DNA of 64,000 nt from Pristiophorus japonicus (lineage: Eukaryota): assembly GCF_044704955.1 (NCBI RefSeq), contig NC_091990.1, forward strand, positions 176,824,001-176,888,000, read 5' to 3'. The position numbers and the translations under genes are program-made. The notes beneath the pieces were generated by a model. That model was not told the DNA's origin, did no database searches, and saw only the letters and a list, made by a program, of their open reading frames with translations. Numbering within the stretch: position 1 is the stretch's first letter; the number at the start of each line of letters is the position of its first letter. This document shows positions 5,277 through 29,816 of the stretch, piece by piece.

Positions 5277-5588
5277 CTGGAAGTGGTAACATTGCCTTTT
5301 TTACAATTGGTTTCTTTAATTTAGCATGATTCACATGGAAGGAAAATTCTTGAAATAAATCTCGTGCAGTTGGTATTAGTTGCAAGCGGGAAGACAGCCG
5401 ATAACATCCATTTTCCTCCCTCTTGGGTTCTCCATGTTTGATTCCTTTGAATATCATTTCTCCTTTTTGCATCCAAGTTGCACTGATTTCTTTGGGGGAA
5501 AAGTTACTGATATTGCAGATAAGAGTAAGATCTGTGCCATACATAGGATCTGGTGGGTCACATTTGATGTCTTCAACAGATGGAATTC
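5277..5588 (-). CDS. exon 9, fifth post-TM C1 domain (gene continues beyond the window)
   Basis: aaacag|GA ATT acceptor and CCA G|GTATGT donor; 312 nt. GIPSVEDIKC..LICNISNFSP..W..FSFHVNH has Phe at the F-strand Cys position. No stop before the donor. Confidence 0.85.
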
Positions 5589-6860
5589 CTGTTTAAATTG
5601 CATGAAACCACAGTTGATCACAATATTGAATAACCTTCATGCTTAAAGATCAAAAAGGGAGGTTAAAAAGAACTGTCTCTTTCTCCTCCCCCAAATGATG
5701 GATATTTAAGAAGACAGCATCCATCAAATCTATCATTGTGCAAATTAGACTTTGGGGGTGAATATTAACTCCAAAACACAGGTGAGTTAGGGTCGGGTGG
5801 CAGGTTAAAGCATTAAAAACCTGGATCTCAGACTCCAGCCCACCTCCACCCCACCCACTTCCAGTTTTAATGGAGGCAGGATGGGAGGTGAGCAGCCAAC
5901 TAGCTCCCAGGGTTGGCACTTTAAATATTATAAATGAGGCTAGCAGCCTCAGATTTAATCTGCTGTGCTGGTTTAACTGTGGCAGTCGCGGTTCCCGGGC
6001 CTCGGGATTTCCGGCAACTGCAAAGAGGCAAGGACTGCCTTAGGGAGAAATCCTTGTGGGCCGGAAGGAGTAGGGAGTGCTTCCTCCTGGCCCAAATTCC
6101 CCCAGCATCAGTCCCCCTGCACCTCCCCAACCCCACCATATAACTCCCAGGTCGGAGGTCGGATTTCCACCCCACCCCCCCCGTTCCACCTCAGATTGTA
6201 CTCCACCTCCTGGAGTCAGGGATCGGACACCTCGCAACCACCCCCACACCCCGGCCCACCACCTCGGGGTCAGAGCTCACACCTACCTGTGGTTCAACAT
6301 CTTCTCCAGCATTCCTCATCTGACTGGAAACCAGCCTGTCAAACGGACTAACCACCGGGCGGCGAACCTGTTTGTGACATTCCACGCACGCTTTGGAGTT
6401 AAACCTCCACAGTTTATGGGGAAACCTGGAGTTCCGGGTTTCCAGCGCTCTACCAGCACTCACCACCATCCCCCTCCCTGCTCCCAGCGGGTCCAAACGT
6501 AAAAATTCCCGTCTTAGTTTCAAAGAAAGTGATAACATTTTTAAAAACTCTTTACCTTACAAAACATTTTGCTGCTGATTTAATAATTACAGCTATGTTG
6601 GGATGCCACCAACTTAGGACCAATGGAGCTACTGAGAGGAACTCTGGAGTCACAGGCAAACAAGAAATGCAAGTGGCACTGTTGCTGAAGATATTGTGGA
6701 TCACCAAAAGAGGTAGTTAAAGCTTGGGCCTCCAATGGCAAAGCGATTATCATTTTCAACGTAAACACAAACCAGCTTCCTGCAGGAGGCAGCCAAGTTG
6801 CGGGCCACTAGCAGAGATTGATGTTTGAAGGTCTTGTGGTCACCATGTTTATAAAAGACT

Positions 6861-7715
6861 TCACGAGGATACAGACAGTCTGTTGAAATGGGTGGACATG
6901 TGGCAGATGATATTTAACGCAGAAAAGTGCAAAGTGATGCATTTTGGTAGGAAGAATGAGGAGTGACAATATAAACTGAAGGGTACAATTCTAAAGGGAG
7001 TGCATGAACAGAGAGACCTGGGGCATATGTGCAAAAATCGTTGAAGGTGGCAGGGCAGGTTGAGAAAGCGGTTAAAGAAAAGCATATGGGACCCTGAGCT
7101 TCATAAATAGAGGCGTAGGGTACAAAAGCAAGCAAGTTATGAAGAATCTTTCTTAAACACTGGTTCGGCCACAACTGGAGTATTGTGTCCAATTCTGGGC
7201 ACCGCACTTTACGAAGGATGTGAAGACCTTAGAGAGGGTGTAGAAAAGATTTACAAGAATTTACCAGGGATGAGGGACTTATGTGGATAGACTGGAGAAG
7301 CTGGAGTTGTTCTCCTTAGAGCAGAGAAGATTGAGAGGAGATTTGATACAGGTGTTTAAAATCATGAGGGGTCTAGACAGAGTAGATAGAGAGAAACTGT
7401 TCCCATTGGCTGAAGGGTCAAAAACCAGAGGACACAGATTTAAGGTGATTGGCAGAAGAACCAAAGGCGACATGAGGAAAAACATTTTTACGTAGCAAAT
7501 GATTTGGATCTGGAATCCCTACTGAAAGGTGGTGGAGGCAGATTCAATCGTGGCTTTCAAAAGGGAATTGGATAAGTACCCGAAGGAAAAAAAATTGCAG
7601 GGCTACGGGGAAAGAGCAGGTGAGTGGGACAAGCTGAAGGGCTCTTGGAGAGCTGGCATGGGCTCGATGGGACGAATGTCTCCTTCTGTGTTGTAACCAT
7701 TCGATGATTCTATGG
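6861..7715 (+). mobile_element. old CR1 3' fragment
   Basis: Degenerate RT C-terminus (LFSLEQRRLRGDLI) and ATTCTATG-type tail. Confidence 0.8.
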
Positions 7716-7913
7716 TTTATCCTCAACGATCACCAATATGCTATTAGTCTCGTCCTATGATATTTGTCTTATCTGACTACGAGCCTCTATTAATATAAAC
7801 AATGCCAATTTAATTAATTTGAAACAATCAAATTTGTCCATTTACAAAATAATCTTTTCAACATTCCATAATTGGGACTATGAAGTTGCACTTCTTGTTG
7901 AAACAATATTTAC

Positions 7914-8234
7914 CTTTCATCTTCAAAAGATAACTGGATGAGACAGGCTTGTTTGAAGTTTCAGAATGAAGGATTTGCATTTTGAACTCATTTCCATTGT
8001 CCTCATCAGTTGGTTTGAATGTTCTTTTGGAGGTTACAGAGAACAAACCAGTGACTTCATCCAATTTACTTCCTTCTGTTTCAACTCCATCATTAGTTTT
8101 CTCAAATGCTTTGAACCAGAATATTTGATGGTCTGATGGAAAGAAGCCATATGCTTTGCAGGAAAGTGTGACACGTTGTCCCACCTCTGGGTAAAGCGGA
8201 TCTGATTTAATTGCTTCTACCTTTGGCATCGACA
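7914..8234 (-). CDS. exon 8, fourth post-TM C1 domain
   Basis: ctacag|TG TCG acceptor and AAA G|GTAAAT donor; 321 nt. LSCKAYGFFP..WFK..FKMQILH has Met at the F-strand Cys position. Confidence 0.85.
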
Positions 8235-8699
8235 CTGTAGTCATACAAAAGAAACAGTGTTAAAGAGATTGTGTAACAGAGAACATCACAAGTTAAAAAA
8301 GTCTAGTAGGCCTTGATAAATTTTAAACTTTGATTTATTGAATGACTATCCTTTTTCTCTGTCCCTCTTTCTTCCCCCCCACACTGTAATACAGTGCCAC
8401 TTTGCAACAATGGTAATTTGACAGTGACATTTCACTTTGCTAATCCATGGGGGCCGAGGCATACTGTAGCACACCAGCTAGCTGATTCCACTTCTGCAAC
8501 AGAAATAAGATCAGCTAACTCAGGGATCAAACTTGCAACCTTATAGTTCTCTCTGGCTCAGGCCCAAATCTGACGGTGCATTTTCCCAATGAGCTAATAG
8601 GGAGCTTCAAACAATCCTAACCGACTCTATTCAGCTTGGTTCAGCAGTACCGCTCCTGCCACTGGAGGTGGTCTAGGTTCTAGCGGCATTCTAGGACCT

Positions 8700-9037
8700 G
8701 AGGAAATAATTTATGCCGACAGGTCAGTACAATGCTGAAAGAGCAGTGCAGTACTGAAAGAGGTAGACACAAAAGATCTCATGGCACTTTTCCAATGAGC
8801 AAGGACTTCGCCTGATGTCCTGGACAACATTTCGACCTCAAATAAAATCACCAAAAAAAGATTAACTGTTCAGTCATCACATTGCTGCTTGTGGGACCAT
8901 ATCGTGCAGAAATTGCCTACCATGTTTGCCTACAAAACAACAAAGATTACACTTCAAAAGTAATTAATTAGCAATCAAATGTTTATGGACTTAAATTGGA
9001 CAAGAAAGGCACTGTATAAATGCAAGATTTTTCTTTC
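8700..9037 (+). mobile_element. Deu-domain SINE remnant (SacSINE1/AmnSINE-like)
   Basis: Recalled Deu-core-like segments (gatctcatggcact..tgtcctggacaacatt..tcacattgctgcttgtggga) and an L2-like tail (tataaatgcaagatttttctttc). Boundaries approximate. Confidence 0.5.
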
Positions 9038-9444
9038 ATGGCATTGTTCTTAGTTATCCTGTGCTTTTATTTCATTTATTGATCTTCTTGGAGTATTTTT
9101 CACAGACTGCAAAAAGATCAACTCGGATTTTCTCATTTTGCTAAAATATCGAAAAAACAAAAAAGTTAACTTTATTTTGTAGGTGACAGCAAGATTTCGA
9201 TTTAATTTATTTTGGTTCCTTTATTCCCGTTGTCTCCAATCGGATCACTCCAGGTAATGGGCCGTCACTAACAGACCTTTGCCAATGCTGAAATCGCCCA
9301 GTAGAATTGGTAGTCACCAACTTAAATCTGTATATTAGTTTCAGTTTATTAATATTTCCCAATTAACAAATCATTACAGTTTATGCATTGTTAAAATCAA
9401 ACCAGAATATTAGTCGATTATGCCCCAGATTTTGCTGTCAAAAT

Positions 9445-9770
9445 ATCATCATCATCATAGGCGGTCCCTCGAACAAGGAGGACTTCCTTCCACGAGAGTT
9501 CAGATGTTTCAATGAAGGACCCGATGTTCCAGTCCTGAACTCCAGTTGAGGGGGTGGAAGATGCCTGTGCGTGGATTTTTTTAATGTGTGGTGACCGTTG
9601 CACATCAGCCACCACACGGGCTTGACAGAGCTAGGCCATTATCCAGTGGCAAGGATTAACCAGGACGACTGGAGACCTGCTCTGTTGCACGGACCTAGTG
9701 CACACACATATCGCAGTGTGGGCTGGCCCGTGCTGCCCCTGGGTCCTCGGCTCTTCTGGGCCCCGTACCA
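9445..9770 (-). repeat. interspersed repeat with a (CAT)n end, probably a retroposon 3' end
   Basis: Homologous copies at about 26425-26690 and 47785-48102 share ggaagatgcctgtgcgtggattttttt..ggacctagtgcgcacacatatcgcagtgtgggctggcc. Orientation inferred from the tail. Confidence 0.65.
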
Positions 9771-10140
9771 TCATTCGCTGCACCTCCACCACGATGTCAA
9801 AATAACAATGAAGCTAATGATGCTCACTATTATTTATGTACAGCAACTTTAGGCGAGGGGTAGAGGAGTGGTTAAACTCAAATATCCAAAAGTTGCTGTC
9901 TTGAGTTGCCTTTAGATTTGTGAAAACGGCATCTCGTCATTTGCTCACCACTGAATGACATGAAGTTGCAGTATTTGCGCAGTAGATCCGAACTAAACCC
10001 GCCACAGAAAGTTAGGTCTGGTCTGAAGTGACGCAAGGAACCCGTCTTGGAGCCATTTAAGTTCCGTGCAAATTTAATTCAGACAAAGGGAGCTTTTTAA
10101 GCTGTCTGAGATGCTTTTAGCAATGTATTAATTATGACCA

Positions 10141-10690
10141 GTTTTGGTCTCCTAACTTGAGGAAGGACATTCTTGCTATTGAGGGAGTGCAGCGAAGGTT
10201 CACCAGACTGATTCCTGGGATGGCGGGACTGACATATCAAGAAAGACTGGATCAACTGGGCTTGTATTCACTGGAGTTCAGAAGAATGAGAGGAGATCTC
10301 ATAGAAACGTTTAAAGTTCTGATGGGTTTAGACAGGTTAGATGCAGGAAGAATGATCCCAATGTTGGGGAAGTCCAGAACCAGGGGTCACAGTCTAAGGA
10401 TAAGGGGTAAGCCATTTAGGACCGAGATGAGGAGAAACTTCTTCACCCAGAGAGTGGTGAACCTGTGGAATTCTCTACCACAGAAAGTTGTTGAGGCCAA
10501 TTCACTAAATATATTCAAAAGGGAGTTAGATGTAGTCCTTATTACTTGGGGGATCAAGGGGTATGGCGAGAAAGCAGGAATGGGGTACTGAAGTTGCATG
10601 TTCAGCCATGAACTCATTGAATGGTGGTGCAGGCTAGAAGGGCCGAATGGCCTACTCCTGCACCTATTTTCTATGTTTCTATGTTTCTAT
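10141..10690 (+). mobile_element. young CR1 3' fragment
   Basis: Closely similar to 13277-13825; (TTTCTATG)n tail; flanking TATGACCA at 10133-10140 and 10688-10695. Confidence 0.9.
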
Positions 10691-10857
10691 GACCAATCTA
10701 CCTCTCTGGCACTGAAAAATTATTACAAATGTGGAGTCTCATTCCTTCAGATATTAATTATTGGAAATTTTAAAAATGTAAAATGTGATTTTTTTTTTAA
10801 ACTTGTCTCTTTTTTCTCTCTTAATCCAAACTTTCTTGCCCTCTCTTTCTGTACCTG

Positions 10858-13826
10858 TACAAAAAGGGCCATTGTACAGCAAAATTCTAAAAGGACAGAG
10901 GGTGTTAAAAAAACAAGCCTAAAGGCTTTGTGTCTTAATGCAAGGAGTATCCGCAATAAGGTGGATGAATTAACTGTGCAAATAGATGTTAACAAATATG
11001 ATGTGATTGGGATTACGGAGACGTGGCTCCAGGATGAGCAGGGCTGGGAACTCAACATCCAGGGGTATTCAACATTCAGGAAGGATAGAATAAAAGGAAA
11101 AGGAGGTGGGGTAGCATTGCTGGTTAAGGAGGAGATTAAGGCAATAGTTAGGAAGGACATTAGCTTGGATGATGTGGAATCTATATGGGTAGAGCTGCAG
11201 AACACCAAAGGGCAAAAAACGTTAGTGGGAGTTGTGTACAGACCTCCAAACAGTAGTAGTGATGTTGGGGAGGGCATCAAACAGGAAATTAGGGGTGCGT
11301 GCAATAAAGGTGCAGCAGTTATAATGGGTGACTTTAATATGCACATAGATTGGGCTAACCAAACTGGAAGCAATACGGTGGAGGAGGATTTTCTGGAGTG
11401 CATAAGGGATGGTTTTTTAGACCAATATGTCGAGGAACCAACTAGGGGGGAGGCCATCTTAGACTGGGTGTTATGTAATGAGAAAGGATTAATTAGCAAT
11501 CTCGTTGTGCGAGGCCCCTTGGGGAAGAGTGACCATAATATGGTGGAATTCTGCATTAGGATGGAGAATGAAACAGTTAATTCAGAGACCATGGTCCAGA
11601 ACTTAAAGAAGGCTAACTTTGAAGGTATGAGGCGTGAATTGGCTGAGATGGATTGGCGAATGATACTTAAGGGGTTGACTGTGGATGGGCAATGGCAGAC
11701 ATTTAGAGACCGCATGGATGAACTACAACAATTGTACATTCCTGTCTGGCATAGAAATAAAAAAGGGAAGGTGGCTCAACCGTGGCTATCAAGGGAAATC
11801 AGGGATAGTATTAAAGCCAAGGAAGTGGCATACAAATTGGCCAGAAATAGCAGCGAACCTGGGGACTGGGAGAAATTTAGAACTCAGCAGAGGAGGACAA
11901 AGGGTTTGATTAGGGCAGGGAAAATGGAGTATGAGAAGAAGCTTGCAGGGAACATTAAGACGGATTGCAAAAGTTTCTATAGATATGTAAAGAGAAAAAG
12001 GTTAGTAAAGACAAACGTAGGTCCCCTGCAGTCAGAATCAGGGGAAGTCATAACGGGGAACAAAGAAATGGCGGACCAATTGAACAAGTACTTTGGTTCG
12101 GTATTCACGAAGGAGGACACGAACAACCTTCCGGTTATAAAAGGGGTCGGGGGGTCTAGTAAGGAGGAGGAACTGAGGGAAATCCTTATTAGCCGGGAAA
12201 TTGTGTTGGGGAAATTGATGGGATTGAAGGCCGATAAATCCCCAGGGCCTGATGGACTGCATCCCAGAGTACTTAAGGAGGTGGCCTTGGAAATAGTGGA
12301 TGCGTTGACAGTCATTTTCCAACATTCCATTGACTCTGGATCAGTTCCTATGGAGTGGAGGGTAGCCAATGTAACCCCACTTTTTAAAAAAGGAGGGAGA
12401 GAGGTAACAGGGAATTATAGACCGGTCAGCCTGACATCGGTAGTGGGTAAAATGATGGAATCAATTATTAAGGATGTCATAGCAGTGCATTTGGAAAGAG
12501 GTGACATGATAGGTCCAAGTCAGCATGGATTTGTGAAAGGGAAATCATGCTTGACAAATCTTCTGGAATTTTTTGAGGATGTTTCCAGTAGAGTGGATAA
12601 GGGAGAACCAGTTGATGTGGTATATTTGGACTTTCAGAAGGCGTTCGACAAGGTCCCACACAAGAGATTGATGTGCAAAGTTAGAGCACATGGGATTGGG
12701 GGTAGTGTACTGACATGGATTGAGAACTGGTTGTCAGACAGGAAGCAAAGAGTAGGAGTAAATGGGTACTTTTCAGAATGGCAGGCAGTGACTAGTGGGG
12801 TACCGCAGGGTTCTGTGCTGGGGCCCCAGCTGTTTACACTGTACATTAATGATTTAGATGAGGGGATTGAGTGTAGTATCTCCAAGTTTGCGGATGACAC
12901 TAAGTTGGGTGGCAGTGTGAGCTGCGAGGAGGATGCTGTGAGGCTGCAGAGCGACTTGGATAGGTTAGGTGAGTGGGCAAATGCATGGCAGATGAAGTAT
13001 AATGTGGATAAATGTGAGGTTATCCACTTTGGTGGTAAAAACAGAGAGACAGACTATTATCTGAATGGTGACAGATTAGGAAAAGGGGAGGTGCAAAGAG
13101 ACCTGGGTGTCATGGTACATCAGTCATTGAAGGTTGGCATGCAGGTGCAGCAGGCGGTTAAGAAAGCAAATGGCATGTTGGCCTTCATAGCAAGGGGATT
13201 TGAGTACAGGGGCAGGGAGGTGTTGCTACAGTTGTACAGGGCATTGGTGAGGCCACACCTGGAGTATTGTGTACAGTTTTGGTCTCCTAACCTGAGGAAG
13301 GACATTCTTGCTATTGAGGGAGTGCAGCGAAGGTTCACCAGACTGATTCCCGGGATGGCGGGACTGACCTATCAAGAAAGACTGGATCAACTGGGCTTGT
13401 ATTCACTGGAGTTCAGAAGAATGAGAGGGGACCTCATAGAAACATATAAAATTCTGACGGGGTTAGACAGGTTAGATGCAGGAAGAATGTTCCCAATGTT
13501 GGGGAAGTCCAGAACCAGGGGTCACAGTCTAAGGATAAGGGGTAAGCCATTTAGGACCGAGATGCGGAGGAACTTCTTCACCCAGAGAGTGGTGAACCTG
13601 TGGAATTCTCTACCACAGAAAGTTGTTGAGGCCAATTCACTAAATATATTCAAAAAGGAGTTAGATGAGGTCCTTACTGCTAGGGGGATCAAGGGGTATG
13701 GCGAGAAAGCAGGAATGGGGTACTGAAGTTGAATGTTCAGCCATGAACTCATTGAATGGCGGTGCAGGCTAGAAGGGCCGAATGGCCTACTCCTGCACCT
13801 ATTTTCTATGTTTCTATGTTTCTATG
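10858..13826 (+). mobile_element. CR1 LINE with uninterrupted ORF2 (APE endonuclease + RT), no ORF1
   Basis: Open frame to the stop at 13726: NARS, ITETW, YRPP, GDFN, SDH endonuclease motifs, then PGPDG, QGSVLGP, FADD; (TTTCTATG)3 tail. Confidence 0.95.
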
Positions 13827-15603: not shown

Positions 15604-16497
15604 GAGAGTTGGGATAAATGGTTCATTCTTGTGTTGACAATCAGTAACTAGTGGGGTGCCTCAGGGATCAGACCCCAACTATTACAATCTATATTAACGA
15701 TTTGGAAGAAGTGACCGAGTGTAACGTAGCCAAGTTTGCTGCCAAACAAAGATAGGAGGGAAAGCAATGTGTGAGGAGGACACAAAAAATCTGCAAAAGG
15801 ACATAAGACAGGCTAAGTGAGTGGGCAAAAATTTGGCAGATGGAGTATAATTTTGGAAAGTGTGAGGTCATGCACTTTGGCAGAAAAAAATCAAAGAGCA
15901 AGTTATTATTTAAATGGAGAAAATTTGCAAAGTGCCCACACCTGGAATACTGTGTACAGTTTTGGTTTCCATATTTACGAAAGGATATACTTGCTTTGCA
16001 GGCAGTTCAAAGAAGGTTCACTAGGTTGATTCCGGAGATGAGAGGATTGACTGATGAGGAAAGGTTGAGGAGGTTGGGCCTCTACTCATTGGAATTTGGA
16101 AGAGTGAGAGGTGATCTTATCGAAACATGTAAGATTACGAGGGAGCTTGACAGCGTGGATGCAGAGAGGAAGTTTCCTCTGATAGGGAAGACTAGAACTA
16201 GGGGGCATAATCTTAGAATAAGGGGCCGCCCATTTAAAACGGAGGTGAGGAGGAATTTCTTCTCTCAGATGGTTGTAAATCTGTGGAATTCGCTGCCTCA
16301 GAGAGCTGTGGAAGCCAGGACACTGAATACATTTAAGACAGAGATAGACAGCTGCTTAACTGATAAGGGATTAAGGGGTTATGAGGAGCGGGCAGGGAAG
16401 TGGAGCTGAGTCCATGATCAGATTAGCCATGATCGTATTGAATGGCGGAGCAGGCTTGAGGGGCCGTGAGCCTGCTCCTATTTCTTATGTTCTTATG
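15604..16497 (+). mobile_element. CR1 3' fragment nested in the Harbinger
   Basis: RT C-terminus (LEYCVQFW) with internal deletion; (TTCTTATG)n tail. Confidence 0.85.
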
Positions 16498-16504
16498 CGG
16501 CAGT

Positions 16505-17193
16505 CATAGAAACATAGAAACATAGAAAATAGGTGCAGGAGTAGGCCATTCGGCCCTTCTAGCCTGCACCGCCATTCAATGAGTTCATGGCTGAACATGC
16601 AACTTCAGTACCACATTCCTGCTTTCTCGCCATACCCCTTGATCCCCCTACTAGTAAGGACTACATCTAACTCCTTTTTGAATATATTTAGTGAATTGGC
16701 CTCAACCACTTTCTGTGGTAGAGAATTCCACAGGTTCACCACTCTCTGGGTGAAGAAGTTCCTCCTCATCTCGGTCCTAAATGGCTTACCCCTTATCCTT
16801 AGACTGTGTACCCTGGTTCTGGACTTCCCCAACATTGGGAACATTCTTCCTGCATCCAACCTGTCTAACCCCTTCAGAATCTTAAACGTTTCTATGAGGT
16901 CCCCTCTCATTCTTCTGAACTCCAGTGAATACAAGCCCAGTTGATCCAGTCTTTCTTGATAGGTCAGTCCCGCCATCCCGGGAATCAGTCTGGTGAACCT
17001 ACGCTGCACTCCCTCAATAGCAAGAATGTCCTTCCTCAGGTTAGGAGACCAAAACTGTACACAATACTCCAGGTGTGGCCTCACCAAGGCCCTGTACAAC
17101 TGTAGCAACACGTCCCTGCCCCTGTACTCAAATCCTCTCGCTATGAAGGCCAACATGCCATTTGCTTTCTTAACCGCCTGCTGTACCTGCATG
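16505..17193 (-). mobile_element. young CR1 3' fragment nested in the Harbinger
   Basis: Close reverse-complement match to about 13140-13825; (CATAGAAA)n tail at the left. Confidence 0.9.
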
Positions 17194-17199
17194 GGTGCA

Positions 17200-18390
17200 T
17201 TAGAGAAAGTTAAGTAAATCTGGCCATGATGAGGCCATCCTTGGCCTCCCGTGTAGCAATGTGTGTCGCTGCTGGTGCCATCTCCACCTTCGGTTCCACC
17301 TCCTGCTCGTCTTCCACCTGTTCCTCTTTCTCCTCCGAAGAGGCTGTGCACCTTGCTCATCCTGCAGCTCCAATCCTCGCTGTTGGGCTATGTTTTGTAG
17401 CATACATCATACAATGATGATTCTGGAGACCCTGTCTGGTGTGTACTGAAGGGCTCCTCCAGATCTGTCAAGGCATCTGAAGTGCATCTTCAGCATGCCA
17501 ATTGTTTGCTCTATGACACATCTGGTGGACATGTAGCTGTCATTATAGCGCTCCTCGGCCTCAGTATTTGGCATCCTGAAGGATGGCATGAGCCACGTCT
17601 TCAGTGGATAGTCCTAGTCTCAGCGCCTCTGTTTGGAGGTGCGAAGAGCTGAGGGAGGACGTATTGACGCAGCATGAAAGATGCATTACAGCTGCCAGGG
17701 AATCTGGTGCACACATGCATGATAATCTTTTTATGGTTATCGATGAGCTGCACATTGAGGGAGTGGAAGCCCTTGTGGTTCACAAACACTCCTGGGTGAT
17801 GATGGGGTGCCTTGATGACCACAGGTGTGCAGGCCATGATGCCCTGCACCTGTGGGAAGCCAACCAGAGCCGCAAAGCTGAGCGCCGGCTCAGTAACATT
17901 GGCTTCATTAGTAGCAAAGTTGACATAATTCTGACATGTCAAACATGGCATCGGTTACCTGGGTGATGCACCTATAGGCGGCCGACTACGAGATGCTGCA
18001 AATGTCTGCTGCAGATCCCTGGAAGGAGCCTGAGGCGAAGAGATTGAGGGCAGTGGTGACTTTGACAGCTGCTGGTAACTCGTGTCCACCAGGTCCTCTG
18101 GGCAGCAGGTCTTGTTCCAGCAAGCTACACATGTCTGCGATGATCTGGCACGATAGTCTGAGCGTCTTGAAGCACTGTTGTTCAGTCATGTCCAGGAAGC
18201 TCATCCTCTGCTTGTATACCCTGTGTTGGGGGTATCGCCATCAGCATGGTGCAGCCCTGTGGCGACCTCCTCTCTCTTGTGGAGCATCAGGTCATTGTGG
18301 AGAAGGCTGCTGTTGTGGCTGCTGTTGGTGGTGGAGTCACCTTGGTCCAGTTCTGAAGTCCAAGGTGAGACAGCATAAGTGGCAGCCATG
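17200..18390 (-). pseudogene. Harbinger (HARBI1-like) DDE transposase pseudogene
   Basis: Fragments [40 protein letters not shown] and [19 protein letters not shown] lie in different frames. Confidence 0.85.
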
Positions 18391-19139: not shown

Positions 19140-19451
19140 CCAGTTTACTGAGTACCCAGTCAGTTTCCATTGGCTCGGTTAGGCTCTCATGTTCTACTTG
19201 GCATGTGTATTTCTTCTTAACATCAGCTCTGGTAGGTACAATCTTCACACTACTGGTCAAGTAATAGAGGTTATCATTTCCCAATGTTGTCTCACTAACT
19301 TCGGATGCTTCTGTCATTTTCTCACCATTTTTGAGCCACGTAACTGTGATTTCTTCGGGGTAAAAGGAACGTATTGGACATTTTAAAGTCAAGACCTCTC
19401 CTGCAACTGGTTTTTCTTCTTCATACGTTATCGTGTCCAGTTTTGGAGTGG
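19140..19451 (-). CDS. exon 7, third post-TM C1 domain
   Basis: ttttcag|CC ACT acceptor and CTG G|GTAAGT donor; 312 nt. LKCPIRSFYPEEITVTWLKNG..YTCQVEHESL is a canonical C1-set pattern. Confidence 0.9.
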
Positions 19452-20698: not shown

Positions 20699-21775
20699 GC
20701 GCCCCCCACCTCCCCCAAAAAAGTGAATAAGTGAATAGTGACAGTGTCGTGACTTTTAGATTTTATCCATTCCAACAATGTCCCTTGTCACACATGCACA
20801 GAGCTTTCTGAGAAATCGGATATGGGTGTAAAGTGGGGGGGGGGGATTGGAAGAACGTGATCTGACTTCCCCGAGTTCCCTCTCTCCCCTCCGATCCCCG
20901 CCACCTGTGTCTCTCTCCCTCCCCCCCCTCCCCCAGGCTCTCTCTCTCTTCCCCCTCTCCTGCAAGGTAGAGGTTGGTTCGCCAAACAACAACAGTGCCA
21001 CCCTTGTCAGCAGGCTTAATGACAATGTTGCCGTTGGATCTGAGAGCGAAGAGCTGCAAGTTGAGAGGGAGGTGGATTGGAGTGAGTGAGTGAGAGGAAC
21101 AGAGACATTGAGATGGCCGATGTCCCTGCTCTTTTATCTCCTCCCTTTCCACTGCCCAGGGCCCCAAATACTCCTTCCAAGTGAAACAGCGATTTACTTG
21201 TACGTCTTTTAATTTAGTATACTGTATTCGCTGCTCATGATGTGGTCTCCTATACATTGGGGAGACCAAATGCAGATTGGGTAACCGCTTTGCAGAACAT
21301 CTCTGTTCAGTCCATAAGCGTGACTCCGAGCTTCCAATCACCTGTCACTTTAATTCTCCGCTCCACTCCCACTCTGACCTCTCCGTCCTCGGCCTCCTGC
21401 ACTGTTCCAATGAAGCTCAACGCAAGCTCGAGGAACAGCACCTCATCTTTTGTTTAGGCACTTTACAGCCTTCTGGACTCAACATCGAGTTCAACAATTT
21501 CAGATTCTAACCTCTGTTCATCTTTTTTCTCCTCTTTTTTTCTCCTCTTTCCTATGGCAGCTGGTGATGATTCCGCCATTCACACCCCACCTAGGCTCAT
21601 CTTTTGTCTCTTAACTTGTTCCATTACCATCTCATTTTTGCCCATCATCCCTTTTGTCTCTTAATCTCTTCTGCCTTCCACCCGATCTCAGACCTTCCCT
21701 TTTGTTCTTTCCTCCCCTCCCCCTTTCACTGCCTCTGCACTTCCTTAAGAATATGTTACAACTCAAACATTTTCC

Positions 21776-21812
21776 AGTTCTGATGAAGGGCCACAGATCT
21801 GAAACGTTGACT
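21776..21812 (+). ncRNA. minimal hammerhead ribozyme motif, second copy
   Basis: AGTT-CTGATGA-AGGGCCACAGATCT-GAAA-CGTT-GACT; stem II is weakened by substitutions. Confidence 0.6.
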
Positions 21813-21942
21813 CTGTTTCTCTCCACAGATGCTGCGTGACCTGCTGAGATTTCCAGCATTTTCTGTTTTTATTCCAGATTCCAGCATCTGCAGTATTTTG
21901 CTTTTTTGTTCTATACAAGGTATTGTCAAAAATATTACATAC

Positions 21943-22323
21943 CTCTAATCTTTAGAATTACTTCTTCCTCTTGGTCACTGCCAGTGCACTCGTGCTGCAC
22001 CTTACAGATGTACTTTGTGTCCTGGTCTTGCAGCAAATCTAGCACAATAACTAGTACACTGGTGATGTTGTATGTTTTGTCATCATACTCAGTCTCACTT
22101 ATGTAGTGTTTATACTTGGACTTCTTCCCTTTGTCTCCAGCAAAGATTGTTCCCTGGCTCTGATCCAGTCGAATGATTTCTTCCAATTCATTATTCTTTC
22201 TGATTCGTTGCCATATGATAATTAATGGTCTTGGTTTAAAACCACTGATTGGACAAGTCAAGGCCACAACCTCATTATGATTGGTGTGAGGTGGCACCAC
22301 AATTTTTGAAATCTTCGGTGGCA
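21943..22323 (-). CDS. exon 6, second post-TM C1 domain
   Basis: cccaaag|TG CCA acceptor and AGA G|GTATGT donor; 381 nt. LTCPISGFKP..W..YICKVQH retains both Cys. Confidence 0.88.
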
Positions 22324-22572
22324 CTTTGGGAAAGAAAAACAAAACAAAGAAATCACCTATTTAAACTGAAATATTTTCACGAGTTACTAAGAGCAAGAAA
22401 ATATTATCTTGCTGTGAATTTTCTATGATTTAGAATCTACAGATGGCAGAACTGCATTGTCATTATTAACCACATGAATGTCACTTCAATGTACAAATAC
22501 ACAAGTTAACAAAAAAGAATAGAATCACATAGCATAAATATTAAGGATTAAATGCAAATGTCCATGATTTAC

Positions 22573-23013
22573 CTCCTTTAATATCCAGTTTTACAGATTC
22601 CTTAATGGGTGACGCAAGAGTTTCATGTTTAACTTCAATAGTTAATTCAGCGCCATTATCGTTGTATACATTAGGATACATTTTGATATTGCACTTTAAG
22701 TTGAAAGTCCCATTACTGTTAATTTCATATTCTGGTTCCAAAGACTTAAAGAGTTCATCTGGTTTATAATCTTCCATAAGTAGCGTCACTTCTTCTAGTT
22801 TTCCATTGTGCTTTGCTCCTTCTTGGTTCTTTGTGATCATGTTCTGACTATTCCAGCTACAAATTTTATTTGTGTTTTGATCCTCCTTCCTCTTTAAGAA
22901 TAAATCAATTCCAATCTCCTTAGGTCTAAATCCAGTAATTTGGCAATGGATGATGCTTTCCTCTAAATGGCGAATGTTTGGAGATACGCTGACGTCAGTA
23001 ATTTTTGGAGTAG
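22573..23013 (-). CDS. exon 5, first post-TM C1-like domain with long internal insert
   Basis: gattag|CT ACT acceptor and GGA G|GTAAAT donor; 441 nt open frame (longer than the ORF track shows). ATPKITDVSV..IHCQITGFRP..NSNGTFNLKC..ELTIEVKHETL; core Trp and F-strand Cys are absent. Confidence 0.85.
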
Positions 23014-23977
23014 CTAATCAAAACAAAAGTAAATTAAAACTTGACAATCGAAATGTTCTCATTGCTTTACTCTGCTTTATTTTCTTGCTAGGATTACAGG
23101 TGTATATACAAGACGTGATATTGTGCATGTATACACAGGCAGGAGTTTCCGTAAGGTTGAGCTGTTTTTTTCCAGCACCATTCATCTGACCAGTGCAAAT
23201 TACATCCAATGCAAATCTAGTTTCCTTTATCTTTTGCATTGGTTTAAAAACATTGTACTAGAAACTGCCCCCGCCCACAAAACTGGCCACACCCCCAGAT
23301 TGAATTAATAACCATTGCAAGTTTCCCCTAATTGCACTCGTTTGCAGGTCTTCAAGGTGGCTCTTAAAATTAAGCATTTTTTTTTACGAGCAAGGACACT
23401 AATTGGCATGTTTTTAAAGCTTTTGAATATAATTTCTTTTTAATTTACTAAGAAACTGACTACTGTACACCAATATAACTAGCAAATGGTTTTGTATAGT
23501 TTTGAAAAGTAATTTTGAGTTATTTAAAATTGGGTTTTTAAAAAGGTGATGTCCTAGAGATTCCGATTAAAAATGCTTATTTTTTGTGATAAAACCATTT
23601 TCAGTTGTATTAAGCAAACTGCACCAAGTTACCACTCTTAAATATATCAAGGAATATTTTTTAAAGCAAAGTTTAAAAAAAAATTACATTCCAAAACGCT
23701 GCCCTATGGCAGATTTTACATTTGGCGATATGCAAATGAGTTTGACCAGAAATGAGAGAAAAAATACACTTCTCAAAACTACTGGAATTTTAGGCACAAT
23801 TTGCACCTGGATTCCAATTGCGCCCAAAGCAGAAACTCCAGGCCAGGTTCTCTATCTAACACCATTATGGGAGCACAATCACCTCATTTGGGGAAAACAT
23901 GCAATAAGCAGCCAAAGAATTACAAGAACACACATAGTTATTGCACAATAAAAGGGTTTCACCAGTTAATACATTAC

Positions 23978-24091
23978 CTTTTTTTAAATATTTGAAATAA
24001 AGTACTGCAGCACCAAGCAATAGTGCACATAACAGCAATGTAACACATATACTTGCAGCAATCGCACGTGTTGAAGAAAGTTTCACAGGCT
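23978..24091 (-). CDS. exon 4, transmembrane segment
   Basis: tttcag|AG CCT acceptor and AAA G|GTAATG donor; 114 nt. EPVKLSSTRAIAASICVTLLLCALLLGAAVLYFKYLKK is a hydrophobic span followed by basic stop-transfer residues. Confidence 0.85.
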
Positions 24092-24256
24092 CTGAAATTT
24101 CAAACATAAATACATAAGCATTAAGACAAAAACCACGCAACAAGAAATAAATTGTCTCACTAATAGAGTTTGTTATGGCACTCCTCCATTTCTGTAAATT
24201 ATAAATGAACATACTTAAAACACCATAAAGTATTGAAAGAATTTGAAACTACAGAC

Positions 24257-24740
24257 ATAGAACATAAGAAATAGGAGCAGGAATAAGTCATTTGGCCCCT
24301 CGAGCCTGCTCTGCCATTTAGTAAGATCATGGCTGATCTGATCATGGACTCAGCTCCACTCCCCACAACCCTTTATTCCCTTATCGCTCAAAAATCTGTC
24401 TATCTCCGCCTTAAATATATTCAATGACCCAGCCTCCACAGCTCTCTGGGGCAGAGAATTCCATAGATTTACAGCCCTCAAGAGAAGAAATTTCTTCTCA
24501 TCTCAGTTTTAAATGGGCAGCCCCTTATTCTGAGATTCTGCCGTCTAGTTTTAGTTTCCTCCACGAGTGAAAATATCCCATCTGCATTCACCTTGTCGAG
24601 CCCCCTCATTATCTTATATGTTTTGATAAGATCACCTCTCATTTTTCTGAACTCCAATGAGTATAGGCCCAACCTATCTTCATAAGTCAATCCTCTCATC
24701 TCCGGAATCAACCTAGTGAACCTTCTCTGAACAGCCTCTG
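24257..24740 (-). mobile_element. CR1 3' fragment
   Basis: GLYSLEFRKMRGDLI and an acataagaa tail. Confidence 0.85.
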
Positions 24741-26175
24741 TGCAGTAAACATCCCCTCTAAGTAATGGCCTAGAAATTTCATGTGGTGAATTGCACCAAT
24801 GAAAAATAAGTTGCAGCTGCCGGTGGATTGGAGAGGTATTTACACCACAATTTCATGGGTCAGCTCATTTGCATGTGTATTAGACCACTGTAAAATAGGA
24901 GTAAATTGCTATGTTGCATGGAAATTAGAGTAGTGCCTTTAAAAAGCCAGTTCTGGCTGAAGATTGCAGCAGTAGGCAAATAACGAACAGTGCTCAACTT
25001 GTATGTCATCTGATAGTTTTTGGGACACTTTACAAGAATGTTTAACACAGGAGAACCCAGCAGAGGCAGCCAAAGTCAGAGGGAGGGTATGAGACCAAGG
25101 CAGAGAAGATCATAGAATGGTTACAGCATGGAAGGCGGCTATTTGGCCCGTCGAGCCCGTGCCGGCAAACGACAGCCCCTCAGTATTGTATTGGAGTGTC
25201 AGCCAAGATTTTGTGCTCTGGTTTCTGGAGTGGGACTTGAACTCACAATCTTCTGATATCGGAGGCAAGGTTACCACCACTGAGCCATGGCTGACACAAG
25301 ATGACACAGTTTCACTGAGTCCAACCTGCAAACCCTCCTCAATTAAATAAAGTACAGGAGAGACAGAATGATTTGTGTCCATGGCAGGAAACATGTTAAA
25401 GAAGACAATCATTGCATGCGGAGGGAGGCAGCACTGGTCAATGCCACAAAATGTTGAATGACTTAATCTGAGGAAACTGTGTAACATACCAGCCACAACC
25501 CCTTTCTTCTTTAGGCACCCTGGGCACTGGTATACTTTTAACCATCTAAAAGTAACAGTTGTACAACTAATCTTTCACTGTGCACCCTGATTAAGAAGAG
25601 CAGTAACACAGGATCATTAATTACATGAACAATCTGAAAACCTTTCCTGCACTTTAACATTGTGCGCTAAGTGGCTTGAGCGACCATCAACTGCAAGCCT
25701 TTGCCTAATTTATTCAATCTGCAGGAGAAAATGGCACACAATGCCAGAGAGAGACAGGCAGCAGGAGAGGGTAACATCAACCTGGAAAACCTCATACCCT
25801 ACGAGATTGTAGCTGTGCACCACATGGAATGGCTTGGTGCTCTTCCTGTGGGAACTAGGAAGATTGAAGGCAAAACAACAACAACTCTGCCCTAATTTAT
25901 CTTTCTTTGGCTAACAACAAAAATTAGGGAAAGCGGTAAGGGAGAGGGCATGGTCAGAAAAATGTCCTTAAATTAGACCTTCAAAGACATGGAAGGAGAT
26001 AGCACAGCAGAATGATTTTAGGAATTAAATTCAAGTTATTGTGACTGAATAAATACTCCCATGGTGGGGCAGTGATTCAGAATCAGAGAAGGGGAGAATT
26101 CAGACAAGTGTGTTTGCCCACAGAAGTTTGCTTATGTCGAGTTGAGCCGGTCTGAGCAGGGATTAGTTATTATTC

Positions 26176-26387
26176 TGTAATGTATATAAACTATACTAGT
26201 GTGTAAGACTTGCCAGCAGGGGGCGCACCTGTTGGAGACCCAAGGGTCACCTGCACACCGGGACAAGCAAGTATAAAAGATTGTCTGCCATGCTGCTTTA
26301 CCACTCTGGAGTTTGATTAAAGAGACTAAGGTCACATCAGTTTGAGCTTACAGTACACAGTCTTGTGGAGTTATTCTGAACATAACA
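26176..26387 (+). mobile_element. solo LTR related to the Gypsy LTR at 4400-4614
   Basis: TGTAATG..ATAACA; shares gttggag..aggg, TATA, cactctggagt..attaaag..ctaaggtcaca with that LTR; TSD not clean. Confidence 0.7.
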
Positions 26388-27133
26388 AGTTCAATGGGAT
26401 TAAGTGCGTAATAGGAGTACAAAGTATTTCAATGAAGGATCTAAAATTCCAAGTCCCGAACTAAATCGTGAAGGATGGAAGATGCCTGTGCGTGGATTTT
26501 TTTTAACGTGGGGTGGCCGTTGCACACCAGCCTCCACACGGGCTTGACAGAGTTAGGTCTTGGTCCAGTGGCAAGGATTAACCGAGATGACTGGAGACCA
26601 GCTCTGCTGCATGGACCTAGTGCGCACACATATCGCAGTGTGGGCTGGCCCGTGCTGCCCCCGGGCCCTCGCCTCTTCTGGGTCCCGAACTCGCGCCTCT
26701 CCTGGGCCCGATCATATCCCTCTACAATCTCTCGCCGCTCTTTCGCCCCGACCTTGCCGCTCCTGCTGTACTTGCCCACGCTCCAATCACCGACCTGGAT
26801 GATGGTGACGTCCATCTTCACTGCCGTTGCTCTCCTGCTCCAGCACGTGCTACTCCCTGCAGTGCTTTGCCGCCATGCTGCTCCAAAGTGGGTGACCTCA
26901 CATTTGCCTACTTTGAAATCCATTTGTCACAGTTTTGACAATTAACTTAATCTATCTATGTTTTTAATGTCTTTTCATTGTGGAATAATAAAGAATGAAT
27001 CCTTGATTTAAATCAGATGGAAACCTCAGTAGAAATTCAATGTTAAAAACTGGTAACAAGTAATTTTAAATAATTGTAAGATTTAACAAAAGAACACTGA
27101 AAAACATTCCCATCTTATGAAAAGAGAACATAC

Positions 27134-27451
27134 CTTGCACTGTGAGTTCAGTAACCAGTAAATAGCCATCAGGATGTGATCGGTGATTCATGATACACCT
27201 ATACTTATTATTATCATCATCCATTGTTGGTTCAATTCTCAGTCTACTGGAAACATTAAAGGTTCCATCACTGTTGGGAATCGGGGAACTAGTGCAGATA
27301 TTTGTTATTCTTGTCACGTTATCCTTTGATAGCTTTTCCCAGATGAGCTCATGCTCCAAAGGATAAAATCCTGTTGCGTCACATCTCACTGACCCTTCTG
27401 TACCAGTCAGAATGGTAATGTGTTGTGTGGACAAACGGACCACTGGTTGAG
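27134..27451 (-). CDS. exon 3, extracellular IgC1 domain
   Basis: cacag|CT CAA acceptor and CAA G|GTATG donor; 318 nt. RCDATGFYP..WEK..NSDGTFNVSS..YRCIMNH has both canonical Cys and resembles the B7-H6 C domain. Confidence 0.9.
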
Positions 27452-29468
27452 CTGTGTTGAAGATAAATATAACAATTGGGCAGACAGGTTGAAGGCACAT
27501 TACCATAAATATGTAAATTATTGTTGTGCAAACATATATGCTAAGCACACCATCATCCTTCCTTCAGGTATTTATCTCATGAAATAATCTACTTGTTTTC
27601 TTCAAGGATGTGGAAAATTATATCTGGTGAATCAAATAAGTTCTAAATACCAGAAAGTCAGATGTAAGCATTCCAAATTGCACCACCACCAACAACCATT
27701 TTTATCGCATCTTTAATGTACAATAATGTTTGAAGGTGCTTCACAAAGGATAGGGGGAGGGGGGGGGGGGGGCGGGGTGAAGGGGATGGAAATAGAACAG
27801 GTGACTAAAAGCATGGTGGAATAGATATATTTAGACAAGGTGTTTGAAAGCAGAGAGAAAGCTGCTACCAGCAGTGGAATGGAGAGAGCAGGGAATGCAC
27901 AGGTAGCCGTTGAGGATCAAAGTATTTGGGGTGGGGCACAACAGTGGAAAGAAGGAGGAAGGGGGAGAGGATAAGAGGGGGATGAGGATGAAGGAGATGA
28001 GGAGAACGGGGGAGATGAGGAGGAAGAAGAGGGAGGGGAGGAGGACAAAAACAATGCGTCGATATAACCTTCAATGCAGACAAACCTCCAAAGGCACTTG
28101 AGAGGCATAATTCATTTCAAAAATGGTAAGCCAAAGAAGGAGGTATTTGGAGGGATGTCCAAAAGCTTGGTCAAAGACGTAGACTGTAAAGAGGGTCTTA
28201 TAGAATGAGAAGGAAGTGGAGAGGTGGAAGATGCTTAGGAAAGAAAATGCCACAACATAGGGCCAAGGTAGCTGAAGGAATGGTGGGATGGAAGAGAGCA
28301 GGATACTTAAGAAGAACAGAGTGTTGGGGGCAGGGTTTGGATGCCTGGAGGAGGGCACAGAGATATGAAAGGATAAAGCCAAAAAGGAGTTAAACCATTA
28401 AAAAAATCATGAACAATAGTTTCACACTATTTATACACAATATTTAAAAAATATTTATTGTAGAGATTTTATAAACCCTGGACAAATCAGCTAGGAAATA
28501 GCCAATATTTTCATGCCATAGAATTTGGTTAGAATTGCTGTAGAAATTGGCCTCGAGAGGGCATAGAATTCTACGGACTTTGGAAATAATACACCCTCAA
28601 AAGGGATTACAATGATGGTATTAAAAATCCTCGGATTTCCAGTAGTACATCTACCATATCAGTCTCAAATTTTTGTGCTTTTTAAAATTATGTTTCATAG
28701 TGATACACTGTTGGGATTGTGTGAATAATTTGTATTTTATCATTGCTTATATTTCAATGTTGGGAATATTCTCATTCGTAGTTTTAGAATGCCTGTTATT
28801 GGTAGCTGTGTGGGGAAACTTCTTGTGCAGCCTGTTAGTGTCCTATTCTGAGCAGTTGAAACAGTAAAAGGTTCTCAGAGCACTTTTATTGAAGAGGTTT
28901 TGGGGGACATTTTTTTGTGCTCATCACAGTTGGGCACCAGAACATTTTTTAAATTTTGTCACCCTGTGCCAGCAAACGAACACTAATTGGGTGTGTTTGC
29001 GACCGGCTATAACTCTTCTACTCTGCCCCAACACTGTACCTCACTATTCACCTCAGAGACGTACCCCTATGCATCATTGTAAGCTTCCAATTTGCCACAC
29101 AGCATTCCTGCTGGTTTCGGGAGTGAGATTGCCAATTCTGTGCAAAAATTAAGGGCGCTCATACTCATTTCACAAATACTGCTAGCAGACAGGATGGAAT
29201 CTCATTCCAGCAGTCTGGACTGCATGCAAATCCAGACTTCATAGGTGAAAAGATTGTGCTAACCCAGTGAATCACCTATTCTATGTTGACCATGTTTATT
29301 TCACACCTTTATGTTTAAATGTATGAAGAACATAAGAAATAGGAGCAGGATGTAGGCCATTTGGCCCATCGAGCCTGCTCCGCCATTCAATAAGATCATG
29401 GTTTAGAGCTTCCCCCACCCAACAACTTAATACTGAAATCAACAACAGATAACATTTTGGAGACTTAC

Positions 29469-29816
29469 CTGACACCTGCATTTCTGAACTCTTTTCTATC
29501 TTATCAGGAGTGACAAATACAACACAGGTGTATTCTCCTTCTTCATTAAACTGTATGTTTGGAAGATGAAGTGAAGCATCTCCTTTCTGTAATTCGGTGT
29601 CAGACATTTTTGCTCCAGTTCTTTTTGGGAAATGGGCTCCTCCATTAAAGACATAGATCGGTGTCCTGTTTTCAATTGACCCAAATAACCACTGGACACC
29701 TACATTTGTTAGGTCGAGTGTTGGTGCCTTATAGCCGGAAATTTTACATTCCAGGGAAACATCATCATTCACTAACACATTCTTTGGTCTTGCAAATATG
29801 TTCACATCCAAGGTTT
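29469..29816 (-). CDS. NCR3LG1: B7-H6/NCR3LG1-like gene, exon 2 (IgV domain)
   Basis: tttag|AA ACC TTG acceptor and TCA G|GTAAGT donor; 348 nt. ETLDVNIF..VSLEC..VGVQW..GDASLHLPNIQFNEEGEYTCVVFVTP resembles the B7-H6 V domain ([26 protein letters not shown] as recalled). The symbol denotes family likeness; orthology is untested. Confidence 0.85.

Follow-up and report, generated by a model that had tools for sequence, protein, structure and literature searches.

B7-H6 (NCR3LG1) is a ligand of the NK-cell receptor NKp30. In the human protein the NKp30-binding part is the ectodomain, made up of a V and a C1 domain, and the short cytoplasmic tail derives from Gag and contains tyrosine and proline motifs. 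C1-set domains are a signature of the extracellular machinery of adaptive immunity, being found in Ig, TCR, MHC, beta-2-microglobulin, tapasin, SIRP, and B7 proteins, and to our knowledge they are otherwise confined to extracellular or luminal proteins. Rods of Ig domains that do without disulfides in the reducing cytosol are familiar from titin and myosin-binding protein C, in which the domains are of the I set. IGSF1 carries a hydrophobic segment in mid-chain among its Ig domains, and its distal Ig domains reach the outside of the cell only with the help of another hydrophobic element and of a transmembrane (TM) segment at the C terminus. Runs of C1 domains with short linkers occur in IgM, IgA, and UrIg2, the last of which consists of a VJ domain, nine C1 domains, and a TM segment (PMC12227049).

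The locus in this report lies in 64 kb of Japanese sawshark (Pristiophorus japonicus) DNA, hereafter the window, and we put at about 75% the probability that it encodes the sawshark orthologue of B7-H6 as one spliced gene, the product being a type I protein with a V-C1-TM arrangement and a cytosolic scaffold tail of seven Ig domains. It shares with human B7-H6 (structures 3PV6, 4ZSO, and 6YJP) the signal peptide, the V and C1 domains, and the single TM segment of a type I protein, but it lacks the short Gag-derived tail and has one of ~820 residues with seven C1-derived Ig domains. Nurse shark B7H6 (P0193; 1092 aa; UniRef, nr) is collinear with the sawshark protein over the full length, with the same V and C1 domains and a TM segment at 261-279 that is followed by seven Ig domains; the individual Ig domains are 48-63% identical, except for the first one of the tail at 37%, and the tail is covered to 100%. 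Since this nurse shark sequence has already been deposited full-length, the sequence is not new, but its interpretation possibly is.

All exons are on the minus strand. The leader exon (58980..59046) starts with an ATG at 59046, encodes the signal peptide MRARGPRTLVWALLAVWLVWLA, and closes with the phase 1 donor G/gtaaag. Its translation matches residues 1-22 of the annotated sawshark protein (P0187, described below) exactly, it is 54% identical over 35 aa to the N terminus of the Heptranchias orthologue, and its helix is placed at residues 7-20 in the AF2 model. Another in-frame ATG is found upstream of the leader start, at 59085. Intron 1, from the leader to the V exon, spans 29.2 kb. The V-set exon (29469..29816; residues 23-138) has both Ig cysteines and a Pfam V-set score of 2e-09, and the extracellular C1-set exon (27134..27451; residues 139-245; acceptor at 27451) has the canonical Cys-Trp-Cys-His pattern and a Pfam C1-set score of 7.7e-09 (36 bits). 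The TM exon (23978..24091) has 38 codons, which include the hydrophobic 24-mer AIAASICVTLLLCALLLGAAVLYF followed by KYLKK, and it terminates in the donor G/gtaatg without a stop, as the preliminary description of this DNA had noted.

The Ig exons downstream of the TM exon are labeled p1 to p5. The first, p1 (22573..23013; 147 codons), is of a divergent C1 type; at 19.2 bits it falls just under the curated cut-off of 21 bits for Pfam C1-set (PF07654), and it was placed in the family by a family HMM (2e-27) and by its fold. The remaining exons are over the threshold: p2 (21943..22323; 127 codons; 29.5 bits), with an insert of ~20 residues; the canonical p3 (19140..19451; 104 codons; 69.4 bits), whose PDB matches are to MHC class I alpha-3, SIRP, and Ig constant domains; p4 (7914..8234; 107 codons; 32.2 bits); and p5 (5277..5588; 104 codons; 46.8 bits). 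Their translations are exact matches to P0187 residues 558-660 for p3, 662-767 for p4, and 769-871 for p5. The 10.9-kb intron between p3 and p4 hides no exon, because p4 directly adjoins p3 in the orthologue, and since p5 closes with a donor the gene extends past the window.

This arrangement agrees with the preliminary description in its exon order, V-C1-TM followed by five C1-like exons, and in its junctions: all eight exons are present, each has an AG acceptor, a GT donor, phase 1 boundaries, and a length that is a multiple of three. The count of about 871 codons given there proved exact, provided that the 22-codon leader, which lies outside the interval then described, is included. A scan of all open stretches on both strands of the 64 kb with the family HMM returned exactly seven Ig exons (V, the extracellular C1, and p1 to p5) and no Ig exon beyond these; in this whole-window scan there was likewise no second leader or V exon between the TM exon and p1.

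RNA contigs confirm that the exons on the two sides of the TM exon are joined. Spliced contigs from run X1 (4971 nt, depth 186) and run X2 (1995 nt, depth 57) connect the extracellular C1, TM, p1, and p2 exons with exact joints at 27134/24091, 23978/23013, and 22573/22323, so that p1 has RNA joints on both sides, and the introns removed are GT..AG on the minus strand. The joint at 23978/23013, whose absence had been named beforehand as grounds for rejecting the whole proposal, is thus present in both runs. Contigs from X1, X2, and X3 cover p2. The X1 contig continues for 341 nt past the C1 exon, a length that would fit the V exon (348 nt), and for 3373 nt downstream of p2, which would fit the three further exons in the window together with ~690 nt of coding sequence outside it and a 3' UTR. 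The gene is transcribed and spliced as a single unit. That the downstream C1 exons are instead a separate gene, or decaying read-through relics without function, has nothing in its favor save the odd layout, and we regard it as scarcely credible: it is refuted by the single contigs that span C1, TM, p1, and p2, it finds no leader or V exon in front of p1, and it is at odds with a tail that is conserved like the ectodomain, orthologous by position, and confidently folded in the model.

The full-length product is recorded as P0187 (Pristiophorus japonicus, 1102 aa, "uncharacterized protein isoform X2"), which contains all eight exon translations, exact and in order. It adds two Ig domains past the window, p6 and, after an acidic linker, a last Ig domain, at whose last strand the protein stops; no anchor follows that strand at the P0187 C terminus. 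The preliminary estimate of five or more C1 domains beyond the TM segment was therefore right for the window, and the complete protein has seven.

The ectodomain identifies the protein as B7-H6-like. In phmmer searches against the PDB, the V exon matched human B7-H6 best (2.4e-14), followed by CD276 (1e-07), and the extracellular C1 exon matched B7-H6 at 9e-11. A profile built from 30 homologues scored B7-H6 at 4e-57 over positions 27-249, that is, over the whole ectodomain, compared to 9e-42 for CD276 (in two stretches) and 4e-28 for TAPBPR. Human B7-H6 is thus the closest solved relative both by single sequence and by family profile, which upholds the assignment first made from the sequence. 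The protein also has the leader signal peptide and the single TM segment after the C1 domain that make B7-H6 type I. The name given to the nurse shark entry is "Natural killer cell cytotoxicity receptor 3 ligand (B7H6)," and the sources for Alligator, Lacerta, Bombina, Rhinophrynus, and Pyxicephalus use NCR3LG1 for their family members; these names are annotations rather than tests. The Gag-derived tail is probably specific to mammals and not a defining feature of the family.

All seven tail domains are confidently folded in the AF2 model (pLDDT, 85 to 94), and the His that follows strand F, a hallmark of C1 domains, is retained in the tail. In p1 (pLDDT, 86.7) the first cysteine is kept, the Trp is changed to Leu and the second cysteine to Ile, and there is a disordered insert of ~35 residues; its best Foldseek matches are beta-2-microglobulin and MHC class II beta-2. 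Both cysteines are kept in the extracellular C1, p2, and p3 domains. The canonical Ig disulfide is lost in p1, in p4 (second Cys to Met), and in p5 (second Cys to Phe), as well as in p6 (first Cys to Ile) and the last domain (second Cys to Ile), both encoded outside the window. This pattern is fixed by position across species, except that the last domain keeps the pair in about half of the sequences, and we infer that, by the time the cartilaginous and bony fishes separated, a hydrophobic residue had already taken the place of one core cysteine at four of the seven positions.

The chain of Ig domains after the TM segment most likely lies in the cytosol. We place it there because of the single strong anchor with a basic flank, the lack of a second hydrophobic segment, the position-specific loss of disulfides, and the occurrence of sequons at chance level. 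One TM segment is found at residues 180-380 in 89 homologues, in all of which the TM exon and its basic flank are kept; the 12 residues after it contain 275 K/R and 36 D/E in total, against 117 and 163 in the 12 residues before it. Of 146 domains that precede the TM segment, 139 retain the Ig disulfide, compared with 201 of the 478 that follow (Fisher 2e-34, for homologues that are not phylogenetically independent). With the same caveat of phylogenetic nonindependence, sequons among the homologues reach 1.62 times their expected frequency ahead of the TM segment and 1.12 times beyond it, and the cysteine count is odd in 31% of the domains before it and 49% of those after. The proposal of a type I protein with intracellular poly-Ig stands as to its layout, one transcript with V-C1-TM, then C1 domains, and no second TM segment, and these sequence features strongly favor the cytosolic side.

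The array might be brought back to the lumen by a further passage through the membrane or by an internal signal, leaving the C1 domains extracellular in the membrane form too. Such a return would accord with the extracellular or luminal setting of C1-set domains elsewhere, and the internal hydrophobic linker of IGSF1 re-routes Ig domains, as is generally known and as PMC6552037 describes in part. The sawshark protein, however, has neither of the IGSF1 elements, the second hydrophobic segment or the C-terminal TM segment. No second hydrophobic segment was found in the protein or in its shark orthologues, nor among the first 60 homologues listed, apart from four borderline exceptions; apart from the signal peptide, the AF2 model has a single helix, at 260-280; and strand A of p1 begins just five residues after the KYLKK stop-transfer flank. 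The sequence thus disfavors a luminal return, which we consider very improbable, and the second TM segment that the preliminary description named as grounds for rejection finds no counterpart in the protein.

A more serious alternative, though still an unlikely one, is that the TM exon behaves as a cassette and that the product that counts functionally is a secreted V-C1-(C1)7 protein, acting as a soluble NKp30 ligand or decoy on an antibody-like stalk, with the membrane form and its cytosolic array secondary. Annotated isoforms that precisely skip the TM exon exist in Hemitrygon (isoform X6; a ray), Heterodontus (isoform X3; a shark), and Bombina (isoform X2; a frog), and skipping preserves the frame because each exon is phase 1 on both sides. 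In sawshark run X3 there are contigs on the neighboring exons and none on the TM exon, but the transcripts of X1 and X2 contain it, with no skipping joint among those listed, and it is this exon with its basic flank that is kept in the 89 homologues. Skips of other exons are annotated as well, so some of these isoforms may be splicing noise. The tail itself gives a divided answer. The cysteine pair of p2 and p3 is present in nearly all of 30 sequences, over >400 million years, which is easier to explain if the array is at times in an oxidizing compartment, and the half of the sequences in which the last domain keeps its pair points the same way; domains p3-p6 also align, in a single stretch of the profile, with the constant regions of IgA and IgM heavy chains, and UrIg2 scores 3e-39 against the profile. 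Against a secreted array are the ancient loss of the disulfide at four of seven positions, the chance-level sequons, and the frequent odd cysteine counts, the last two being unusual for secreted proteins. In UrIg2 and the Ig heavy chains, all C1 domains precede the anchor or are secreted and the disulfides are kept, whereas in the sawshark protein the TM segment comes directly after the second Ig domain and before the third, the array follows it, and four of seven positions are without the disulfide.

The layout is present from chimaeras to alligators (crocodilians) and lizards, with p1 at the same place in 129 homologues. Each tail position forms its own clade (support, 0.47 to 1.0) and is orthologous from chimaera to alligator. 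Among shark orthologues, identity within the tail domains is 50-72%, close to that of the ectodomain and far higher than the 24-47% of the TM segment and linker. Judged from these comparisons, the V-C1-TM-Ig-tail layout goes back to the earliest jawed vertebrates and has persisted from then on. Our literature search, which did not extend to the text of the 2012 B7H6 paper, found no published description of this architecture; it was presumably Flajnik et al. who reported nurse shark B7H6 in that year.

For a cytosolic tail, the nearest analogue in its way of working would be titin and myosin-binding protein C, although those muscle proteins are soluble and built of I-set domains, and the sawshark tail is of C1-set descent and tethered to a membrane ligand. 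The extracellular V and C1 domains would display the ligand, and beyond one TM helix a tight chain of seven Ig domains, starting five residues on, would fold in the cytosol without disulfides and form a stiff scaffold for protein binding beneath the membrane, linking the ligand on display with partners in the cytosol for purposes of clustering, anchoring, or trafficking. In mammals a Gag-derived tail has taken the place of the Ig tail, and skipping of the TM exon may yield a soluble form with the same array secreted. We suggest, as a tentative broader picture, that in the ancestor of jawed vertebrates the NKp30 ligand already had seven C1-derived Ig domains arranged as a rod in the cytosol, the first intracellular case of the antibody/MHC constant type, kept position by position for >400 million years, unanalyzed in the literature, and lost in mammals, and that the TM cassette could switch the array between the cytosol and the outside.

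If true, a conserved cytosolic C1 array on an NK-cell ligand would widen the known roles of the fold, and B7-H6 would gain an intracellular function that was lost in mammals or replaced by a retroviral Gag piece, with a bearing on how a shared stock of C1-bearing genes gave rise to those for B7, MHC, and antigen receptors. Should the tail already be mentioned in the 2012 B7H6 paper, the contribution of the present analysis narrows to the RNA proof in a second shark order, together with the per-position orthology of the tail, the fixed pattern of disulfide loss, and the TM-skipping isoforms. A search of the tail for a conserved tyrosine, a short signaling motif, or another linear motif found none; the tetrapeptide YSNI in the sawshark linker recurs only in the sevengill shark.

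The gene on the minus strand probably encodes a type I membrane protein whose cytosolic tail is an array of Ig domains, an architecture and topology that we put at roughly three chances in four. Its V exon (29816-29469), with a Pfam V-set domain, is followed by the exon of the extracellular C1 domain (27451-27134), the transmembrane (TM) exon (24091-23978) and five exons for the post-TM Ig domains p1 (23013-22573), p2 (22323-21943), p3 (19451-19140), p4 (8234-7914) and p5 (5588-5277), all on the minus strand. Pfam places five of these above the C1-set threshold, namely the extracellular C1 and p2 to p5, and p1 falls short of the cut-off (19.2 bits versus 21). All eight exons have an acceptor AG and a donor GT, measure a multiple of three and are in phase 1 on either side; each closes with a G, to which the following exon adds the other two bases of the codon. 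The preliminary description had given these eight minus-strand exons, in phase 1 with AG/GT junctions throughout, and it stands. It was also right that the TM exon closes in a donor without a stop; the donor reads G followed by gtaatg, and the exon encodes a hydrophobic stretch of 24 residues and then KYLKK. A family HMM built from the Ig domains of the window and their homologues, and run on open stretches of both strands, matched precisely seven Ig exons in the whole 64 kb and no further ones. The leader exon (59046-58980, minus strand) lies 29.2 kb upstream of V and was placed by homology and by the N terminus of P0187, a Pristiophorus japonicus database protein; homology set it there, and leader candidates at 43791 and 35830 were discarded.

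RNA containing this stretch was available from three small runs of one study (X1, X2 and X3), which were compared as contigs over positions 21900-27600. Contigs of X1 (4971 nt, depth 186) and X2 (1995 nt, depth 57) both span C1, TM, p1 and p2, and in both the three introns are excised exactly, with GT..AG ends on the minus strand. Transcripts thus do splice the TM exon to p1, and the preliminary description withstands the refutation that it had set itself, namely that the TM exon and the C1 exons behind it share no transcript. The X1 contig continues for 341 nt past the C1 exon, which by its length would be the V exon (348 nt), and for 3373 nt past p2, a length that would accommodate p3 to p5, some 690 nt of coding sequence from beyond the window and a 3' untranslated region.

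All eight exon translations are present in P0187, in order and letter-identical, so that the gene has already been predicted automatically; UniRef lists the protein as "uncharacterized protein isoform X2" of Pristiophorus japonicus, 1102 residues. Since the leader sits in the window and p6 onward lies outside it, the window covers residues 1-871, and the earlier estimate of about 871 codons was exact. Outside the window, P0187 has three further parts: p6, then a 33-residue acidic linker in which YSNI occurs, then a final Ig domain with which the protein closes; in a survey of domain charge, the linker alone was consistently acidic. The full-length analyses were done on this protein. Its AlphaFold2 model, made with 30 homologues, has a mean pLDDT of 83.5; in it a signal helix is followed by two beta domains, a single helix at residues 260-280 and seven further beta domains with pLDDT of 85-94; the only low-confidence regions are the p1 insert and the linker. 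Modelled singly (pLDDT 86.7), p1 has as its top structural matches beta-2-microglobulin and the MHC class II beta-2 domain, both C1-type folds.

The ectodomain (V plus extracellular C1) belongs with B7-H6. Among solved structures, the V exon is closest to human B7-H6 (2.4e-14), with CD276 second (1e-07), and the C1 exon likewise matches B7-H6 (9e-11). With a profile built from 30 homologues, B7-H6 scores 4e-57 over the entire ectodomain, ahead of CD276 and TAPBPR. The nurse-shark orthologue (1092 residues) has the identical layout, with 48-63% identity per Ig domain and 37% in p1, and was deposited as "Natural killer cell cytotoxicity receptor 3 ligand (B7H6)". The name NCR3LG1 is given by the sources to relatives in Alligator, Lacerta, Bombina, Rhinophrynus and Pyxicephalus, and most others are "uncharacterized"; among the six proteins returned by an ectodomain search with a chimaera homologue, none was named B7-H6.

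Several features place the tail, that is, everything C-terminal of the TM, in the cytosol, a location that we infer from the anchor, the flanking charge, the loss of disulfides, the sequons and the odd cysteines. In sequence, the TM is a strong single anchor with a positive-inside pattern: pooled over the homologues, the 12 residues on its C-terminal side contain 275 K/R versus 36 D/E, and the 12 on its N-terminal side contain 117 versus 163. Strand A of p1 begins five residues past the anchor, and no second hydrophobic segment or C-terminal anchor was found in P0187, the shark orthologues or the AlphaFold2 model; because of this, a return of the tail to the lumen, as in IGSF1, is excluded. 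Of the domains preceding the TM, 139 of 146 retain the Ig disulfide, versus 201 of 478 of those following it, with a Fisher probability of 2e-34 that overstates the case because the sequences are related. Loss of the disulfide is fixed per position across species: Cys2 is replaced by Ile, Leu or Val in p1 (where the core Trp is also replaced), by Met or Val in p4 and by Phe in p5, and Cys1 is replaced by Val or Ile in p6. Apart from the Trp of p1, the disulfide-less tail domains keep the C1 hallmark His and the core Trp. Relative to the shuffled expectation, N-glycosylation sequons are 1.62-fold as frequent on the N-terminal side of the TM and 1.12-fold on its C-terminal side, and an odd cysteine count is seen in 49% of tail domains versus 31% of those before the TM. 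Conserved N-glycan sites counted per tail position are too few to weigh either way.

Against the cytosolic reading counts the retention of both cysteines in p2 and p3 in nearly all 30 sequences, as would suit a product that skips the TM exon and secretes the entire Ig array. Such a product, which would be the main rival if abundant, is likely a minor second form. Annotated isoforms of B7-H6-like genes lack the TM exon and nothing else in the ray Hemitrygon akajei (P0154, isoform X6, 38 residues), the shark Heterodontus francisci (P0132, isoform X3, 31 residues) and the frog Bombina bombina (P0020, isoform X2, 34 residues), and for these isoforms secretion of the whole array is predicted. In X3, the exons flanking the TM exon have a depth of 4-10 but no contig covers the TM exon itself, and a contig of 383 nt on the C1 exon ends downstream in 42 unplaced letters; the gap could be due to low coverage or to TM-exon skipping, which look the same in contigs.

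The membrane-anchored layout with an Ig tail is widespread. A phmmer search of 1.84 billion representatives with p1 gave 129 matches, mostly proteins of 600-1500 residues aligned at residues 280-440; 89 homologues, a subset of those retrieved at that stage, have a single TM within residues 180-380 and at least 150 residues beyond it. Seven is the commonest number of post-TM Ig domains among the homologues. The layout occurs in chimaera, including Callorhinchus milii (UniProt V9K7L7, in the same cluster), in many sharks and rays, in bichir, reedfish, sturgeon, coelacanth and lungfish, and in frogs, salamanders, one caecilian, lizards and alligators. The only teleost matches, P0150 and P0175 of Gymnothorax javanicus, have a weakly related ectodomain (26% identity) and a TM at the extreme C terminus, and therefore the layout was unseen in any teleost in these searches. 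Word-based database searches with the tail returned V/C1 architectures exclusively, and an Atlas search returned C1-set clusters exclusively. Among 20 long or atypical matches, Pfam found only Ig families, bar one protein (P0053, 818 residues) that has V, C1, TM and p1 and then, instead of more Ig domains, a Tachylectin beta-propeller (6e-30). In the skate homologue (P0006 and P0137 of Amblyraja radiata), the V-C1 unit is present as two tandem copies, with V at 47-156 and 266-375, ahead of a TM at 494-512.

A tree of C1 domains from nine species gives each position (the ectodomain C1, p1 to p6 and the last domain) its own bipartition, with SH-like support of 0.47-1.0 and above 0.9 for six of the eight, which dates assembly of the array to before the split of cartilaginous and bony vertebrates from their common ancestor; judged from these sequences, recent exon duplication is not its source. 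Constraint was gauged by per-domain protein identity among shark orthologues, which is 50-72% in the tail domains, near the level of the ectodomain, and just 24-47% in the TM and linker.

The protein is probably an NKp30-ligand homologue displayed at the membrane as a type I protein, with a cytosolic tail that would form a rigid chain of Ig domains independent of disulfides and could act beneath the membrane as a scaffold; docking or clustering is a tentative suggestion for its function. Neither a conserved tyrosine nor any other short conserved motif turned up in the tail, and the linker YSNI has a counterpart only in the sevengill shark (Heptranchias), as YCNI. Complex prediction with two copies of p3-p5 from the sevengill orthologue gave no support for a homodimer, a result that weighs neither way.

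This gene, already annotated automatically, is orthologous to a deposited shark sequence named B7H6. Full-text searching, whose reach did not extend to the 2012 paper defining B7H6, brought up no text that describes a B7-H6 tail as containing Ig domains. Shark and frog B7H6 were reportedly defined by Flajnik et al. in 2012, and it is a toss-up whether the tail is mentioned there. New from this locus are direct RNA evidence that TM is spliced to p1, the product in full, the orthology of each position, the disulfide pattern and the TM-skipping isoforms.

The window also holds several repeats. An intact non-LTR retrotransposon ORF of 1042 residues (10598-13726, plus strand), with AP-endonuclease and reverse transcriptase domains in Pfam, sits within the 10.9-kb p3-p4 intron, and 3' copies of that family, all truncated, are found on the minus strand at 2097-3047, 16605-17360 and 24478-24711 and on the plus strand at 15840-16409 and 7283-7495. 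Fragments of LTR-retrotransposon pol with integrase zinc-binding and integrase core domains (337-1889, 3662-4367 and 63172-63852, plus strand) are interrupted by stops and an inserted LINE fragment. A G-rich minisatellite with a 40-nt unit occupies 54872-55186, and a C-rich minisatellite in intron 1 (44523-45863, unit of about 28-30 nt, about 43 copies) accounts for the GC peak (0.62) and strong negative GC skew of that intron.
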